Below the pieces are notes generated by a model. It saw nothing but the letters and a program-made list of their open reading frames with translations. It was not told the origin of the DNA and did no database searches. Of a stretch of 64,000 bases of DNA, positions 1 through 52,705 are shown piece after piece; position 1 is the stretch's first letter; every line of letters begins with the position of its first letter. The stretch covers positions 29,946,001-30,010,000 of the forward strand of contig NC_088854.1 in NCBI RefSeq assembly GCF_963853765.1, given 5' to 3'. The position numbers were made by a program, and so were the translations under genes. This stretch comes from Magallana gigas (Eukaryota).

Positions 1-2
1 TT

Positions 3-792
3 TGCTTACTCCCCTTGGCTTTCTGTGCCCCATCGGACATTGATAAGAGATGGCTGATAAACGGTAGGTGTTTACAAATCATACAAACAAACAAACAAAC
101 AAATAAGGAAAACTTAAACAACAACAACAAGAGCAACATATCCAAACAAATAAAATAAGCAAGCAAAAAGAAAATATAAGCATTATTATTATAAACATCT
201 TGACTCGGACGTTGAAATCAAATGGCGGACTAATCATAAAGCTTCTCTTTGCCTAAACTAGTCCACCAAGTGATTGAACAGATCAAACACCTCGTGACCC
301 CAGACATGGAACTTTCCGCCTGTGACACTGCCTGCAAATCCGTCGTGGCTGGACTCGGTGCCCTTGTCTGTCCCACTGCTTGCTCCACGTAAATCTATAT
401 CTCTATTCAAAGATCAAGTTATAAATCCTTGTTTTATCCCCAACATTTCTAATGATGATCTACACTTTTGAGTGCATGCGCATTTGATGGTTAGTTGTTC
501 TACGGTTTTTTTTTGTATATCAATTCAAGGATAACGGTCTTAATTGTTCAAAATCATGTTTTTGAAAATCTTCCTTCACTCCTGATTTAAATTATTGGAA
601 AAAAACCCGTATCTTGAAAAACTTTTTGTTTCCTCATTGATTATACAAACACATTATCGTTATTTTTCGATATGTTAATGGAGGGGGGGGGGGTTAAAGA
701 CGATTTTTTGTTTATTCATATCGATTATTCACCACCACTTTAACGTATATTTCTTTTTTATTTCCAGATTGATCGGCAGTCTTAACGGTTAA
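3..792 (+). CDS. Secreted prepropeptide, 5'-truncated. Exons <3-63, 262-388, 768-792. ...CLLPLAFCAPSDIDKR|WLINVHQVIEQIKHLVTPDMELSACDTACKSVVAGLGALVCPTACSTLIGSLNG*
   Basis: Not in the ORF track. Donors GTAGGT (64) and GTAAAT (389), acceptors ctag (261) and ttccag (767). Phases 1 and 2 join into one open frame ending TAA 790-792, with AATAAA at 795-800. Hydrophobic signal-peptide tail, dibasic KR and four Cys as CxxxC...CxxxC. Confidence 0.85.
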
Positions 793-1840
793 TCAATAAA
801 TATAAAAATCATTTCCTTGTTTCTTATATATTTCATTGGTTTCTTTTGTGTTTGACACCGACTAAAAAATACCGTAATGCATGTGTTCACGTACCTGGAT
901 GAAACAAGGGGTGTTGAACGAGGCGCATGGGGGTGGGCATTCATGGTTGATCTTCTTCGTCCATCTCTCCAACACCCATTATCCCCCATTCCAGAGGATG
1001 GTTCTGTTCTCTGTTTCTAAAAGCTCAATTTGTACAAAAAGAATACTAGTAAGACAATTTAATTCCTTAAATGATTATATTGAATTATTTGAGAGAGATT
1101 AGCAGAGAATTAGACTTTTAATGTTAATTGGCGAATAATGACCATGGCTGCAATATAATTTTTATTTAGGCTACAATAATTACAATTTTTACTGGTCACA
1201 CCTGTAACCAAGGTTACCAACCCAAGAAAATAGGGCACTTACGGCAACCAAAATGGCAGATACCGGTACATGTAAACCACAGGTGTTCGGTTGTTGGATA
1301 GTGGAGTTCTTAATTATCTGTTCCAGAAGACAGAACTGATTAAAATTGGTCATCTTATGTGTGTTTCTATGTATTGCAATAAAACAATGACTGAAAACGC
1401 CTTTTTAACAAGATTGAAACAGGGATTTTCAGTGAACTATTTTTTTATACTGATTTCTGTGATATCTATATGTAACAAATCAGTAATAGTTAATGTATGA
1501 ACCCCAAACTGAGAGTTGCCAAAGGTGGTGTTTGGTTACTTGTATCGTAAAATGGTTTTAGCACACGGATGGAATTAAGAAATTACTCTTGATTTCCCTG
1601 CTTTCAAGTGTATTGATTTGATCAATGAGAAAGTCGGACGTCATTCATATTCAGAACAATATTTTTTTGGAATGTTGATAATAATGGAAACAAGCGAAAT
1701 GGTATAATTAAAAGAAAAAGAAAAAAAAAACCATCCAAAATACAATGTACATGGTTTGATATTAGTTCACAGAATACTTTAGCAGTTTAATGTTTCAGTT
1801 ATACAGGGCAGTTAAATTTGCTTCCATTTGTATATAAATT

Positions 1841-24318: not shown

Positions 24319-26136
24319 ACAACATGACAGATCTACAGCTAGGTCTATTGATATATGTAGTGCAACCGTATATTGTGTAATTATCACAATAAATCATTAA
24401 AATTTCGAAGTCGCAAGCAAAACGAGGTTAAATACCGGCATATACGACTAAAGGGTATACAAACAAAGCAACAGTTAGGGACTTTACGTTTTTTTCCTTC
24501 TTGAAGACTCAATTATACATCTTTTTGAATCCCATGGTGTCGAAATAAACCAATATTTCACATTTTTGAAGACTGATGGCATAATAATTTAATTCTGACG
24601 TTACGTTTGAATTTTGTACAATTTTACGTCATTTTAAAGGTCAAATGACCGTTTTGATCTACAATGAATTGTAAAAAAAAAAAATATAAGCAATGGATTC
24701 AATGTTAGTTTTATACGATATGAAATGGTTTGAAACAGTTTACGCTTTTTCATAAACCGCTTTGCGGTTGATAAAGCGTAAACTGCCCCAAACCATTTTA
24801 TTTCCCATAAATCAAATAAATATTGAATTCATTCCTTAAATCAAGAATCTCATTTTAGGCAGTGACTGTCGACGGCGCTAAGGTGAGAACCTTTGACCTG
24901 ATGACGTCAAATGGCGTGGTTCACGTCATTGACTCAGTGATGATACCCCCTGCCGGCGATATAGTGACACAGCTGAATGATAACTTTGATTTCACCACGC
25001 TGGTCTCCAAGGTCACTCAGGCGGGGCTTGCTTCTGCACTACAGGGTGAGAATCGTCGACTTGTACACATTATGAACGGTTCATATAAAAATTAAGGGTT
25101 ATACTTTTTGGGGGATGTGGTAGGGTGGGGTGATTTGGTAATTATTTATTCATATTCTGATTGGTTTGAATATTTTTCTTTCAAAATATCTAGTTATGGT
25201 TTTATATGATGGTTTGGTATCCTTTTTTTAGGCAATAATTTGACCGTGTTTGCCCCTACCAATGCTGCTTTTGCGAAACTTAGTGCTTCAACTCTACAGA
25301 AATTAGAAAATGATCCAAATATGCTCAGAGGTACACCACAATCTCAATATTTTTTAAAAAAAGCTATGGATTTAGTATCTTTAATTAAGAAAGTCAATGT
25401 GAAGCATTGCATTCGTTTGGAATCTGTATTTTTAGAGGTCTTGCTATACCACGTTGTTCCGCACACTGTGTATTCCGCTGGATTATTCAACAAAGAGAGG
25501 CTACGAACTCTGGATTCCAACGGGGACCCTATTCAAGTCACTATTACCGGTGAGCAAACTGTTCAAGTATATTAATCATCATCAATATTACACAGTTACG
25601 GCTGTACTAATTGTTATTTCACCCTAGCGTGTTTGTGGAGTCTTCCGTCCCGAACCAAATGATACAGGTTTCATGCATAGGGAAAAAAATCAAAATATTA
25701 AATCAAATTAAAAGAAAAGAAAAAAATCACACACACACGAAATAAATTAATAAATAAGAAGCAGCAAGCTACATGTAGTGAGTTTAAGAACCTAACTTGT
25801 GTATCCACAAACGTATAATGATGGTTTCCAACCGGAACACCTGCCAAGATTGTCGGAAAGCCAAAAAATAGTATTTTAATAGAATCTTGACCAAAATGTA
25901 AATTATCACAAACATTTTTACACAGATAAACTGTTAATATCAATTAGTAATATGAATAAATATTTAAGAGCTTGTCAATAAATGAACACTTTATAAATGT
26001 TTCAGGTGGCAAGGTGTATCTTGACCTTTATTCCCAAGTCACGGAAGCTGACGTCACGGCAACTAATGGAGCTATTCACGTCATTGACCACGTGATCGTC
26101 CCAGATCGCTATTACTTAAATCTCGTCGTGGGTTAA
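23314..26136 (+). CDS. Secreted protein with two FAS1 (fasciclin) domains, TGFBI/periostin-like, 295 aa; divergent paralog of the array genes. Exons 23314-23452, 23733-23950, 24859-25045, 25232-25330, 25436-25549, 26006-26136
   Basis: Signal peptide MIKLLSILSCVQFALCG. Two sets of FAS1 motifs: H1 TVFAPTN, YH (LKYHVV/LLYHVV) and H2 (NGVVHVIDSV/NGAIHVIDHV). All introns are GT-AG with consistent phases; CDS 888 nt, ending ...RYYLNLVVG*. Confidence 0.93.
24199..24335. repeat. Perfect 137-bp nested palindrome (two 68-bp arms, 1-nt spacer), possibly a MITE with TA TSD, in intron 2 of the fasciclin gene
   Basis: The right arm is the exact reverse complement of the left arm. Each arm is itself an imperfect hairpin around TGGGTGGGT/ACCCACCCA. 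Confidence 0.9.
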
Positions 26137-32318: not shown

Positions 32319-34354
32319 ATGCTCGCCTTTGTAGCTTTGACCGTGATTGTGCAGAGTGTGTTTGGGGGAAACCTGGTAGAGGTTCTACAAAACGACGGTG
32401 AGACGACTTTGATAGCTCTTGTTAAACAAGCGGGTCTGGCCGACGCTCTACTGTCAGGTATGCTGTTTTCAATAATTTAATATATATTAGACGATTTAAT
32501 GATTGAATTGTTTTGTCTAAGCGGAATTACTAGAAAACTCAAGTAGCATTAGTGAAGAGGAGTTTTAATTTTGTTTTTAATTCAAATATGATATCAATTC
32601 GAGAAATGTTTCACCCATTTAACCTCAAAATGACTGCACCTTGCAAATTTTCATTCAAAATAAAACACTATGTAACCACTATTAAGTTTTTCCAAACCAC
32701 TGGTCATCATTACTGCCTTAAACATAATACATATTCGTGACATTTTACCTTTTACAAAATAAATGATATTACTTAATTGAAAGCAAAAAATGATAATCAT
32801 GATCTATGCGAATTTCAAAATCTCATTACATCATTTTATGACTACATGTATACCCTAAATCCCTAATAACAGTAAACGTTGACTGAAGATAGAAATGATT
32901 TATATTACAAATGATTTAAATATAGAGGGTTTTTCTACGTATTATTTCTGCAAAAAAAAAAAAAAAAAAAAAAAAAACCCGATCCGATCGACCTCCTGAA
33001 TTTGTTCTGTAAACAAAATTCACTTTTACGTATTTTTACATAAATGATCATAATACATGTAATAATGCATAAAATTCAAGCAACAAACAGATTCGAGATA
33101 GTTCACCTGGATTTAAAAGAAACTTTAAATTCTGACTATGTGCTCAATCTCTGATAACAATATCATCTGAACGAGAAGTGATTACTAATTTTAATTTTCT
33201 GTTTACTATCACAGGAGAGTACACCATATTTGCTCCAACAAACGCTGCATTCTCCAAACTTCCCCAGTCTGTCCTTGACGGTCTACAGAGAGATACCACC
33301 GCTTTGGCAAATATACTGAAATACCACGTGGTCAAAGGTTCCATTCACAAGGCCGATGCATCCAATGAGCTTCAGTTGGAGACTTTGGCTGGAACCAAAA
33401 TCAGATTCAACATCTATAATCACAATAACGTATGTGTTTTAAAGTTTTCTTTTTTATGTACTAAAATTAATCAAATATATCTTCTCATAAACAATCATTC
33501 AAACTACATAGACATTTTTTGTTTGTACGTGTAGGTTGTTACAGTGGAAGGATCCAAAATCACACACTTTGATCTGACCGCCTCAAATGGAATGGTGCAC
33601 GTCATCGACACCGTGATGATGCCTCCTACAGGAAGCATCGTGGATTTGGTGGCTGGCAACAGTGACCTGAGCACTCTTTTATCTAAGGTGCAGTCAGCTG
33701 GATTAGCCGGGGCACTACAGGGTTAGTTATTATGCTTGTGTTTTTATACATGTTTTCAAATTTTATTTTCTACCATTACTTAAAAAATGAATATTTAATA
33801 TTCCCACTATTTTATACAGGGGATGCTCTAACAGTGTTTGCACCAACCAATGCTGCTTTCAATAGACTTGGTAGTCATGTTTTGGACAACCTTAGAAGAA
33901 ACCCACAGCTTCTTAAAGGTATGCATTTCTCAATTGATATCTTATTTACTGATGATTACAACTCAAATTTAAAATGCGAGTAAGATCTCTCTTTTCTCTT
34001 TAGAAATTCTGGAGTACCACGTCGTTCCTCACACTGAATACTCAGCTGGATTGTACAACCGAGAATACCTCAGAACCCTTGATACTCACCATGACGTCAT
34101 CAGACTTGGAGTCAGCAGTAAGTGTTCAAGCTTATGTTATTGTCACCTTTATTGTTATTTTAGAAATCTGTGCATCGGTAAAAAAAATAATACAATAAAT
34201 TTTTCTCATTCCAGGTACTAATGGTGTTGTTATTAATCATCGTTCTCACGTGACACAAGCCGACATCAGCGCCACCAACGGTGTCGTACACATCATAGAT
34301 CACGTACTTATTCCATCCCGTTATCTTTTCTCTGCGATATTGGGGAAAAAGTAA
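32319..34354 (+). CDS. Two-FAS1-domain secreted protein, array copy A, 297 aa. Exons 32319-32457, 33215-33429, 33535-33721, 33820-33918, 34004-34117, 34215-34354
   Basis: Signal peptide MLAFVALTVIVQSVFG. FAS1 H1/YH/H2 motifs occur twice. Exons of 139/215/187/99/114/140 nt with intact frame, ending RYLFSAILGKK*. AATAAA at 34480. Confidence 0.93.
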
Positions 34355-44764: not shown

Positions 44765-46815
44765 ATGCTCGCCTTTGTAGCTTTGACCGTGTTTGTGCAG
44801 AGTGTTTTTGGGGGAAACCTAGTAGAGGTTCTACAAAACGATGGGGAGACGACTTTGATAGCTCTTGTTAAACAAGCGGGTCTGGCCGACGCTCTTCTGT
44901 CAGGTATGCTGTTTTCAATAATTTAATATATATTAGACGATTTAATGCATGATTGAATTGTTTTGTCTCAGCGGAATTACTAGAAAACTCAAGTGGCGTT
45001 AGTCAAGGGGAGTTTTAAATTTGTTTTTAATTCAAATATTCAAAATAATAAATGATACAATTCGAGAAATATTTCAACCATTTTCCTTCAAAATGACTGG
45101 ACCTTGCAATTCGTCATTCAAAATAAAACACTATGTAACCACTATTAAGTTTTTCCAAACCACTGGTCATCATTACTGCCTTAAACATAATACATATTCG
45201 TGACATTTTACCTATTACCAAATAAATGATATAACTGATTTGAAACCAAAAAAGTGAATCATGATATATGCTAATATCAAAACCTCATCACATCATTTTA
45301 TGACTCCATGTATACCCTAAATCCCTAGTAACAGTAAACATTGACTGAAGATAGCAATGATTTATATTACAAATGATTCAAATATAGAGGGTTTTTCTGC
45401 ATATTATTTCTGCAAAAAAAAAAATAAAAAAAAAAAAAAAAAATCCCGATCTGATCGACCTCCTGAATTTGTTCTGTAGACAAAATTCACTTTTACGTAT
45501 TTTTACATAAATGAGCATAATAATAATGCATAAAATTCAAGCAACAAACAGATTCGAGATAGTTCACCTGGATTTAAAAGAAACTTTAAATTCTGACTAT
45601 GTGCTCAATCTCTGATAACAATATCATCTGAACGAGAAGTGATTACTAATTTTAATTTTCTGTTTACTATCACAGGAGAGTACACTATATTTGCTCCAAC
45701 AAACGCTGCATTCTCCAAACTTCCCCAGTCTGTCCTTGACGGTCTACAGAGAGATACCACCGCTTTGGCAAATATACTGAAATACCACGTGGTCAAAGGC
45801 TCCATTCACAAGGCCGATGCATCCAATGAGCTTCAGTTGGAGACTTTGGCTGGAACCAAAATCAGATTCAACATCTATAATCACAATCACGTATGTGTTT
45901 TAAAGTTTTCTTTTTTGTGTACTAAAATTAATCAAATCTATCTTCTCATAAACAATCAATCAAACTACATAGACATTTTTTGTTTGTACGTGTAGGTTGT
46001 TACAGTGGAAGGATCCAAAATCACACACTTTGATCTGACCGCCTCAAATGGAATGGTGCACGTCATCGACACCGTGATGATGCCTCCTACAGGAAGCATC
46101 GTGGATTTGGTGGCTGGCAACAGTGACCTGAGCACTCTTTTATCTAAGGTGCAGTCAGCTGGATTAGCCGGGGCACTACAGGGTTAGTTATTATGCTTGT
46201 GTTTTTATACATGTTTTCAAATTTTATTTTCTACCATTACTTAAAAAATGAATATTTAATATTCCCACTATTTTATACAGGGGATGCTCTAACAGTGTTT
46301 GCACCAACCAATGCTGCTTTCAATAGACTTGGTAGTCATGTTTTGGACAACCTTAGAAGAAACCCACAGCTTCTTAAAGGTATGCATTTCTCAATTGATA
46401 TCTTATTTACTGATGATTACAACTCAAATTTAAAATGCGAGTAAGATCTCTCTTTTCTCTTTAGAAATTCTGGAGTACCACGTCGTTCCTCACACTGAAT
46501 ACTCAGCTGGATTGTACAACCGAGAATACCTCAGAACCCTTGATACTCACCATGACGTCATCAGACTTGGAGTCAGCAGTAAGTATTCAAGCTTATCTTA
46601 TTGTCACCTTTATTGTTATTTTAGATATCTGTGCATCGTTAAATAAAATAATACAATAAATTTTCCTCATTCCAGGTACTAATGGTGTTGTTATTAATCG
46701 CCGTTCTCACGTGACACAAGCCGACATCAGCGCCACCAACGGTGTCGTACACATCATTGATCACGTACTTATTCCATCCCGTTATCTTTTCTCTGCGATA
46801 TTGGGGAAAAAGTAA
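44765..46815 (+). CDS. Two-FAS1-domain secreted protein, array copy C, 297 aa (A/B mosaic). Exons 44765-44903, 45676-45890, 45996-46182, 46281-46379, 46465-46578, 46676-46815
   Basis: Intact frame with the same exon sizes. Confidence 0.92.
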
Positions 46816-50666: not shown

Positions 50667-52705
50667 ATGCTCGCCTTTGTAGCTTTGACCGTGCTTGTGC
50701 AGAGTGTGTTTGGAGGAAACCTGGTAGAGGTTCTACAAAACGATGGGGAGACGACTTTGATAGCTCTTGTAAAACAAGCGGGTCTGGCCGACGCTCTACT
50801 GTCAGGTATGCTGTTTTCAATAATTAATTATATATTAGACGATTTAATGATTGAATTGTTTTGTCTAAGCGGAATTACTAGAAAACTCAAGTGGTGTAAG
50901 TCAAGAGGAGTTTTAATTTTGTTTTTAATTCAAATATTCAAAATAATAAATGATATCAATTCGAGACATGTTTCACCCATTTGCTCTCAAAATGACTGGA
51001 CCTTGCAAATCGTCATTCAAAATAAAACAATATGTAACCACTATTAAGTTTTTCCAAACCACTGCCTTAAAAATAATACATATTCGTGACATTTAACCTA
51101 TTACCAAATAAATGATATAACTCAATTGAAACCAAAAAGTGAATCAAAATCTATGCAAATTTCAAAATCTCATTACATCATTTTATGTCTACATGTAGAC
51201 CCTAAACTAAATCTCTAATAACAGTAAACGCTGACTGAAGATAGAAATGATTTATATTACAAATGATTAAAGTATAGAGGGTTTTTCTAGGTATAATTTC
51301 TCCAAAACAAATAACCAAAAAAAAAAAAAAAATAAGAAAAAAAAGAAAAGACAATCCGATCGGCCTCCTGAATTTGATCTGCAAACAAAATTCATTTTTA
51401 AATTTTTAAATAAATGATCACGATTATATGCATGAAATTCAAGCAACAAACAGATTATTTCACCTGGATTTAAAAGAAACTTTAAGTCCGGATTTAACAA
51501 TGCAATCAATCTCTACTAATGATTACTAATTTTAATTTTCTGTTTACTATCACAGGAGAGTACACCATATTTGCTCCAACAAACGCTGCTTTCTCCAAAC
51601 TTCCCCAGTCCGTGCTTGATGGTCTACAGAGAGATACCACCGCTTTGGCAAATATACTGAAGTACCACGTGGTCAAAGGCTCCATTCACAAGGCCGATGC
51701 ATCCAATGAACTTCAGTTGGAGACTTTGGCTGGAACGAAAATCAGATTTAACATCTATTATCACAATCACGTAAGTGTTTTAAAGTTTTCGTTTTTTGTG
51801 ATACCCAAATCCGTCAAACCTATCTTCTCGCATACAATTGCTCAAACTACAAAGACATTTTTGCTTGTACATGCAGGTTGTTACAGTGGAAGGATCCAAA
51901 ATCACACATTTCGACCTAACCGCCTCTAATGGAATGGTGCACGTGATTGACACTGTGATGATGCCTCCTTCAGGAAGCATTGTGGATTTGGTGGCCGGCA
52001 ACAGCGACTTGAGCACTCTTTTATCTAAGGTCCAGTCAGCTGGATTGGCCGGGGCACTACAAGGTTCATTATTCTGCTTGTTTTATTATTATTTTTTTTC
52101 CAATTTTATTTTTTTGGCATTGTTTAAAAAATGAATATTTAATATTCCCACTATTTTATACAGGAGATGCTTTAACAGTGTTTGCACCAACCAATGCTGC
52201 TTTCAATAGACTTGGTAGTCATGTTTTGGACAACCTTAGAAGAAACCCACAGCTTCTTAAAGGTATGCATTTCTCAATTGATATCTTCTTTATTGATGAT
52301 TACAACTCAAATTTAAAATGCAGGCAAGATCTCTCTTTTTCTCATTAGAAATTCTGGAGTACCACGTCGTTCCTCACACTGAATACTCAGCTGGATTGTA
52401 CAACCGAGAATACCTCAGAACCCTTGATACTCACCATGACGTCATCAGACTTGGAGTCAGCAGTAAGTATTCAAGCTTACGTTATTGTATCAATCACCTT
52501 TATTGTTATTTTAGATATCTGTGCATCGTTAAATTAAATAATACAATAAATTTTCCTTATTCCAGGTAACAATGGTGTTGTTATTAATCATCGTTCTCAT
52601 GTGACACAAGCCGACATCAGCGCCACCAACGGTGTTGTACACATCATAGATCACGTACTTATTCCATCCCGTTATCTTTTCTCTGCGATATTGGGGAAAA
52701 AATAA
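50667..52705 (+). CDS. Two-FAS1-domain secreted protein, array copy D, 297 aa. Exons 50667-50805, 51556-51770, 51877-52063, 52164-52262, 52349-52462, 52566-52705
   Basis: Intact frame. Variants IYYHNH, PPSG, SNNG. Intron-3 donor GTTCAT. Confidence 0.9.

Follow-up and report, generated by a model that had tools for sequence, protein, structure and literature searches.

The first 792 nucleotides of a 64,000-nucleotide stretch of the Magallana gigas genome (assembly GCF_963853765.1, contig NC_088854.1, positions 29,946,001 to 30,010,000 of the forward strand; this whole stretch is referred to below as the window) raise the question of whether a small gene is hidden there in pieces and, if so, what kind of peptide it makes. 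According to the original prediction, made from the letters alone, three hidden exons splice into a secreted prepropeptide, from which a Lys-Arg (KR) site releases a 54-residue peptide with an amphipathic N-terminal helix and two CxxxC motifs. We find that the locus is a genuine, spliced and highly transcribed M. gigas gene, the product of which is predicted for the secretory pathway, and that this product belongs to a family of peptides spread across the molluscs.

Reading the sequence, we located the three coding pieces where they had been predicted (window ..63, 262-388 and 768-792, all on the plus strand), and they join in a single frame. We also read the 1.5 kb upstream of the window and located there the ATG, 21 nt ahead of window base 1, and the beginning of the first coding exon, which follows a ttttttcag acceptor and lies 33 nt ahead of the window. 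Within the window, the 3' part of this exon (1..63) is spliced to position 262 in RNA and ends in the donor AAACG/gtaggt (exon letters in capitals), after which intron 1 (64..261) spans 198 nt of A-rich, low-complexity sequence. The middle coding exon (262..388) is bounded by ctag/TCCACC and CTCCAC/gtaaat, and intron 2 (389..767, 379 nt) ends at tttccag/ATTGAT, where the last exon (768..811) begins. This exon encodes the C-terminal residues ..LIGSLNG (768-789), closes with ..GGTTAA, the TAA lying at 790-792, and continues into a 19-nt 3' untranslated region with an AATAAA polyadenylation signal at 795..800. Both introns are of the GT..AG type, intron 1 being in phase 1 and intron 2 in phase 2.

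The full product is 78 amino acids long and consists of a signal peptide, MKVAVFLLCLLPLAFC, the octapeptide APSDIDKR and a 54-residue peptide that begins with WLIN and ends in Gly. The last nine residues of the 16-residue signal peptide are encoded at 1..26, with the cleavage predicted by eye between ..AFC and AP. They are followed by the acidic eight-residue propeptide, with the dibasic site at its end (27..50), and by the first codons of the mature peptide (51..63; W-L-I-N and the first base of Val). The middle exon carries the end of predicted helix 1, the stretch QIKHLVTPDM, both CxxxC motifs and most of the predicted hairpin. The original prediction had placed an in-frame ATG and a signal peptide upstream of the window, and both were found; judged by inspection, the signal peptide opens with M-K, has a hydrophobic core of 13 residues and carries small residues at both -3 and -1, and M1, P12 and the overall layout are kept in 25 full-length homologues.

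Public RNA agrees with the splice sites and the single frame in bearing out the three-exon structure. We compared four public runs with a 5,961-nt stretch (L016) that contains the window gene and its upstream neighbour, and both of the splice joints named in the original prediction were present. The 63/262 joint, which skips 198 nt between GT and AG, is covered by four independent raw reads in a stranded poly(A) run (X24), and the first mate lies on the minus strand in all four, which identifies the RNA as plus-strand; the same joint is found in contigs of three further runs at word depths of 6,169-26,550. The 388/768 joint (379 nt skipped, again GT..AG) is present in two runs, and a poly(A) tail is attached at L016 5912, corresponding to window ~811, 11 nt past the AATAAA. 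Word depth over the exons of the window gene rises to 89,274 (middle exon, run X19) compared with ~5 in the run sampled as raw reads, indicating that expression differs greatly between samples. Over intron 2, RNA depth is very low (0-27), so a form that retains it is at most minor.

Several side observations concern alternative forms of this transcript and of the gene. Were intron 2 retained, the frame at 389-392 would read ACG TAA and stop at once, yielding a 71-residue product that lacks the last seven residues and hence the putative amidation Gly. The same 71-residue form is what gene callers predicted (P0001) from three contigs (SRR24489187, SRR24489156 and SRR24489157 from Logan; L013-L015) that lack exactly the 198-nt intron 1, with base precision at GT..AG. 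Their sequence is collinear with that of the genome (96-98% identity) over a span that opens ~1.1 kb upstream of the gene and closes 300 nt inside intron 2. The contigs look genomic because there is no RNA depth over the upstream DNA, and they would then represent a segregating allele with a precise loss of the intron; alternatively, they may be chimeric assemblies of DNA and abundant cDNA. At the 5' end, L016 4631-5164 (470 nt before the ATG exon, and that exon) is covered at about one-tenth of the exon depth (1,770 and 564) in two metatranscriptomic runs, in which the depth over intron 1 is only 8-25. This suggests that a 5' intron is retained or that there is a second transcription start lying nearer. 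For a candidate 5' non-coding exon upstream (TATA-like box at L001 826-833, donor at 878/879), the reads contained no joint.

The M. gigas genome holds two further copies of the gene, which share its two intron positions and phases and have AATAAA directly after the stop codon. The tandem paralogue, LOC117681481, lies 4.4 kb upstream (G000:C2:29940954-29942192, plus strand; locus L011 633-1870); it has RR in place of KR, ends in ..SLNGK and shares 63% identity with the window peptide. Zero depth was recorded over its exons in the four RNA runs in which the window gene is abundant, and the copies therefore differ in expression. The third copy (G000:C5:30643780-30646900, minus strand; locus L002; UniProt K1QRH5 / A0A8W8NII5) is 76% identical in the mature part, and its database models splice a short 5' non-coding exon to the ATG exon; the TATA-like box and donor upstream of the window gene (L001 826-879) resemble this arrangement. 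Orthologues occur in Ostrea and Saccostrea, with 72-83% identity in the mature part. Ostrea edulis LOC125645876 shares 83% identity with the window peptide, and the adjoining LOC125645877 shares 81% with the C5 copy; the duplication is therefore older than the split between Ostrea and Magallana. Pairwise ratios of nonsynonymous to synonymous substitution (dN/dS) are 0.05-0.26 with dS saturated (>1.3), as expected of old duplicates under purifying selection.

These results bear on the possibility that the locus is non-functional, whether as an open frame arisen by chance, as a decaying duplicate or as a non-coding transcript. The annotated sources searched yielded no identical match to the 78-residue product, the coverage of this genome there being possibly incomplete, and the silence of the tandem paralogue in four runs points the same way. 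However, splicing and polyadenylation are exact, the frame is intact, the intron phases are conserved, and neither orthologues with up to 83% identity nor dN/dS ratios of 0.05-0.26 would be expected of such a sequence. We consider it scarcely credible that the gene has no function.

Searching 1.84 billion representative proteins with a profile yielded 33 matches, and a word-indexed search added 26, making ~60 relatives in all. They come from bivalves (Pinctada, from a transcriptome, Mytilus, Sinanodonta, Potamilus, Dreissena, Mactra, Mercenaria, Ruditapes and Solemya), gastropods (Littorina, Batillaria and Patella) and cephalopods (Octopus and Argonauta). All are named "uncharacterized" or "hypothetical" at source, save for one automatic "Conotoxin" label, which is attached to one UniProt model of the tandem paralogue and lacks Pfam support. 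The two CxxxC motifs highlighted in the original prediction proved to hold the family's only invariant residues: in alignments of 41 and 37 units, no column is invariant except those of the four Cys, and the array is CX3C-X10-20-CX3C throughout, with a spacer of 11 residues in oysters. A basic site (KR, RR, KK or ER) is found at the equivalent position in ~45 single-unit members and between the units of polyproteins. Acidic residues precede this site, F/W/L and then L/I/F come after it almost throughout the family, and this conservation argues for the predicted KR release site. The C-terminus is G or G[KR] in 28 of 49 single-unit members, with ..NG in the window gene and ..NGK in the tandem paralogue, so that the terminal Gly, which had been put forward as an amide donor, probably is one.

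Besides single-unit members, the family includes polyproteins of 2-7 units, with seven in Littorina, six in Solemya, four in a partial Batillaria model and several examples among metatranscriptome proteins. Their units are separated by linkers that are rich in Ser/Thr/Pro/Ala and end in KR, or in some cases by G-KR. Mean net charge over the units of the family is -4.8, and in 41 of 42 it does not exceed zero. From its four D/E, two K and two H, the window peptide had been described as slightly anionic, and this holds: with 2 D, 2 E, 2 K and 2 H, it has a net charge of -2 and an isoelectric point of 5.3. The anionic character of the whole family makes a classical cationic antimicrobial peptide (AMP) unlikely, and the earlier suggestion of host defence is disfavoured for the usual cationic kind. 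Charge and Cys array also differ from those of defensin, big defensin, mytilin, myticin, macin and myticalin, in line with the earlier view that the peptide is not a named bivalve AMP.

Full-text literature searches by peptide sequence, by database identifier and for alpha-hairpinin in mollusc returned no mention of the family. Nor did Pfam, PDB or fold searches give a strong match to a characterised family, which would have spoken against novelty. The family, its breadth in molluscs, its single-unit and polyprotein forms and its anionic character thus appear undescribed in the literature and databases searched, although its general kind, a secreted, convertase-processed, disulfide-stapled helical hairpin, is already known. 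A Cys-rich oyster peptide, clionin, is named in PMC8398477.

The fold was modelled with AlphaFold on the mature peptide of the Ostrea orthologue, which is 83% identical to that of the window, using a 41-sequence alignment. The model (predicted local distance difference test score, pLDDT, 83) has helices at residues 5-12, 22-32 and 35-52, with C25/C29 predicted to lie on the second and C41/C45 on the third of these, antiparallel to each other. The amphipathic N-terminal helix of the original prediction is upheld in part: the hydrophobic moment over residues 1-16 of the window peptide is 0.45, but the modelled helix covers only residues 5-12. A 76-residue unit from Patella is predicted to have the same core with extra N-terminal helices (pLDDT 71). 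The motif C1X3C2-Xn-C3X3C4 of the cysteine-stabilised (CS) alpha/alpha class is present, as is the helix-loop-helix in the AlphaFold prediction, and on this modelled fold we file the peptide under CS-alpha/alpha hairpins, rather than under saposins, eclosion hormone or TMEM59.

Pfam searches with four oyster proteins, seven more members and 41 units returned no real family, the many small matches on polyproteins arising because scores add over repeats, and a sequence profile search of the PDB gave no match. The two models had no significant match in the PDB (Foldseek, VIA wide), AFDB Swiss-Prot, AFDB clusters or the ESM Atlas, where the entries returned were either three-helix matches of a generic kind or uncharacterised mollusc proteins from the family itself. 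The top rows among the AFDB clusters, unnamed or "Uncharacterized protein" entries with Foldseek probabilities of 0.66-0.99, were taken to be further members of the family. The hairpin (residues 17-54) superposes on VBP-8 (6o3q) and the Jug r 2 leader peptide (9q1l_F) over nearly the full extent of these two (37-38 residues, root-mean-square deviation (rmsd) 2.4-2.5 A) with a Z of 3.7, which is not above background, Z scores below 8 being common for helical models by the tool's own account.

The likeness to a truncated saposin or NK-lysin fold, raised in the original prediction, turned out to be weak. NK-lysin scored Z 4.1 and 4.8 (rmsd 2.2 A over 55 residues), Ac-SLP-1 4.4 and 4.6, and granulysin 4.1 and 4.3, and NK-lysin was the top Foldseek match for the Patella unit (E 1.4, probability 0.38). 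Saposin-like proteins recur for two independent models, with all scores within noise. The profiles SapB_1 and SapB_2 matched no member at E <=10, and the six-Cys pattern is absent, the family having four Cys; a saposin identity was set aside on these grounds. Saposin-like proteins are likewise small, secreted, disulfide-bonded helical bundles, which contact lipids, and saposins resemble the mollusc family in being acidic and cut from a polyprotein. Nevertheless, they have six Cys, three bridges and four to five helices in ~80 residues, whereas the mollusc peptide has four Cys, with both putative bridges on one hairpin.

Two further candidates were rejected. Eclosion hormone (EH) is also a helical, disulfide-bonded secreted peptide, of ~60 residues, but with six conserved Cys, and PF04736 gave no match in 41 units (E <=10) or in full-length proteins. 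In a protein-language-model search the EH cluster ranked second, with an ESM feature score of 0.75 that falls below the tool's reliability line. A scan of the oyster genome with PF04736 gave one match on another chromosome (C10; 19.8 bits against a cut-off of 25), which reads CVKNCENC and then stops, with no more Cys, and was for this reason not called an oyster EH gene; the oyster EH precursor is reported to contain two ligands parted by a dibasic site (PMC8398477). TMEM59/BSMAP (PF12280) matched weakly in 6 of 41 units (best E 0.01), with a sum of 30.8 bits over a four-unit protein, and only the true TMEM59 on chromosome piece C7 matched in the oyster genome; hhalign of the family against the oyster TMEM59 exon gave a probability of 2.8%.

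Taken as written in the sequence, the precursor has the features of a prohormone: a signal peptide (by inspection), a conserved basic site and a putative amidation signal. By analogy with established secretory-pathway processing, signal peptidase would cut off 16 residues, a furin- or prohormone-convertase-type enzyme would cleave after APSDIDKR, and the terminal Gly would be consumed to amidate Asn53, leaving an Asn-amide. Disulfides C1-C4 and C2-C3, a pairing that we infer from other CS-alpha/alpha peptides (PMC4278219, PMC7191063), would hold helices 2 and 3 together. Release would yield a peptide of 53 residues and three helices, anionic and hydrophobic in character.

What such a peptide does is a matter of tentative interpretation. 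We put at roughly 40% the probability that it is an extracellular ligand, of the hormone, paracrine or pheromone type, with a specific partner. This reading is drawn from several features together: processing in the style of a prohormone, precursors with multiple copies, conservation of the free N-terminus, polar residues of helix 1 and the loop that do not vary, and strong constraint. Multi-copy precursors with KR-spaced units are the usual layout of neuropeptide and pheromone precursors, and a G or G[KR] C-terminus is the classical signal for peptidylglycine amidation. In the stretch QIKHLVTPDM, the residues Q, K, H, T, P, D and M are invariant in six oyster sequences, which together with the low dN/dS suggests a specific surface. 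Recognition by the partner would involve the conserved free N-terminus, with its aromatic residue followed by an aliphatic one, as well as the invariant polar face that helix 1 and the loop present. By description, the peptide can be likened to water-borne helical pheromones such as Aplysia attractin, an acidic, secreted peptide of ~58 residues with two antiparallel disulfide-stapled helices that acts outside the animal, although attractin has six Cys in another pattern and a conserved motif of its own.

Several findings weigh against a role as a ligand. Identity across mollusc classes is only 20-35%, with the scaffold alone conserved, and there are tandem expansions of at least eight genes in Sinanodonta and at least six in Dreissena. 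The family is missing from the oyster and mollusc ganglion-centred neuropeptide catalogues and supplements that we searched, which argues against strong ganglion expression or a major neuropeptide but is compatible with a peripheral hormone or a pheromone. In some whole-sample RNA runs the word depth is 10^4-10^5, which, taken with the tandem expansions, looks more like an abundant effector than a neurohormone. In addition, the window peptide has a grand average of hydropathy (GRAVY) of +0.68 and an uncharged, hydrophobic C-terminal half of 24 residues, and these properties suit receptor binding no better than contact with a membrane or lipid.

The last of these points would suit the same matured peptide acting as a membrane- or lipid-active secreted effector (saposin-, alpha-hairpinin- or amoebapore-like) in defence, digestion or surface protection, perhaps pH-tuned by its histidines. 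High hydropathy, the uncharged C-terminal half, the amphipathic N-terminal stretch, very high RNA depth in some runs and the tandem expansions all favour such an effector, as do the recurrence of saposin-like proteins (NK-lysin, Ac-SLP-1 and granulysin) in both fold searches, the weak likeness to alpha-hairpinins and the polyprotein precursors, which are shared with prosaposin and plant alpha-hairpinins (PMC7191063). However, the structural scores all fall in the helical-model background (Z <8; E 1.4), neither the six-Cys pattern of saposins nor Pfam SapB is present, and the anionic character of the family (mean -4.8; 41 of 42 units at zero or below) sets it apart from nearly all bivalve AMPs known. 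Fast-evolving immune effectors, moreover, do not typically show strong purifying selection or polar residues that never vary. We regard an effector role as possible, if rather doubtful, and give somewhat more weight to an extracellular ligand.

Two groups of known peptides share the Cys motif C1X3C2-Xn-C3X3C4 with the mollusc peptide. The first is the plant alpha-hairpinins (EcAMP1, Tk-AMP-X and vicilin-buried peptides, among them VBP-8), which carry it on a helix-loop-helix and many of which come from multimodular precursors of 2-12 units (PMC7191063), resembling the gastropod and Solemya polyproteins. They belong to a different kingdom, and the PDB profile search found no sequence homology to them; the mollusc unit differs in having an extra conserved N-terminal helix, a start of F/W-L, KR sites and an amidation signal, and it is anionic, whereas plant alpha-hairpinins are mostly basic AMPs or trypsin inhibitors. 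The likeness is most likely convergence on one scaffold.

The second group is the CS-alpha/alpha toxins of cone snails (vil14a and flf14a-c) and scorpions (kappa-hefutoxins and OmTx), with disulfide pairing I-IV and II-III (PMC4278219, PMC7191063). They are venom-gland peptides of 22-27 residues that block K+ channels, and were compared here by description; the cone-snail toxins are themselves molluscan, and their precursors have not been described. The mollusc peptide could conceivably be an endogenous relative of these toxins (vil14a/flf14a-c, scorpion kappa-KTx) that blocks or modulates an ion channel or enzyme, for example in deterrence or in regulating the animal's own channels. Such a relationship would be in keeping with the identical Cys motif, the predicted hairpin, the published toxin connectivity, the undescribed vil14a precursor (PMC4278219, PMC7191063) and the automatic "Conotoxin" name on the tandem-paralogue model. 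Set against this, that name is without Pfam support, oysters are non-venomous filter feeders, and the window peptide, at 53-54 residues, is double the length of the toxins and has a third, N-terminal helix; there was no PDB profile match, and no Conus sequence was among the family matches. We consider kinship of this kind very unlikely.

Rather than acting on a receptor, membrane or channel, the peptide might be a bulk secreted component of mucus, shell matrix or egg coat, or a carrier of hydrophobic ligands or of metals bound through His, Asp and Glu. Its units are acidic, hydrophobic and contain His, the transcript is abundant, some of the polyproteins have Ser/Thr/Pro-rich linkers, and a Pinctada transcriptome is the source of one member. 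It would nevertheless be unusual for a matrix protein to carry a conserved convertase site and an amidation signal, and the peptide is short, compact and tightly constrained, with neither matrix-type repeats nor low complexity. A structural or carrier role is accordingly improbable in our judgement.

If the peptide is an extracellular ligand, a wider proposal can be made, namely that twin-CX3C peptides form an undescribed mollusc-wide signalling system with its own receptor, acting as a hormone or water-borne pheromone, single in bivalves and cephalopods and polyprotein in gastropods, and that they are also the source of vil14a-type conotoxins. We regard this proposal, taken as a whole, as speculative and unlikely to be right in full. 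The family nonetheless deserves attention. Its range runs from oysters to octopuses, its convertase and amidation signals are clear, some oyster RNA samples contain it in great abundance, and it has escaped the neuropeptide catalogues and annotations searched in spite of repeated mining of mollusc peptides. It would be the first endogenous, non-venom animal family on a cysteine-stabilised helical hairpin, and the first such family with both single-unit and polyprotein precursors, a layout otherwise that of plant alpha-hairpinins. For oyster biology it offers an abundant and readily synthesised 53-residue candidate regulator or effector, and for toxin evolution a testable candidate source of the orphan vil14a-type conotoxins. 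Its present value is that of a well-founded lead, the function being inferred only.

Two minor observations concern the surroundings of the gene. Between the tandem paralogues, L016 1394-2388 (G000:C2:29942293-29943287) shows heavy depth in all four RNA runs. Many fixed differences and partly fitting reads indicate that this segment resembles a transcribed repeat family with expressed copies elsewhere. Further downstream in the window, on the same strand as the peptide gene, lie four Fasciclin (FAS1) open frames (25240-25575, 33178-33534, 45639-45995 and 51519-51929; E 3e-13 to 4e-21), which look like exons of one or more multi-FAS1 genes.

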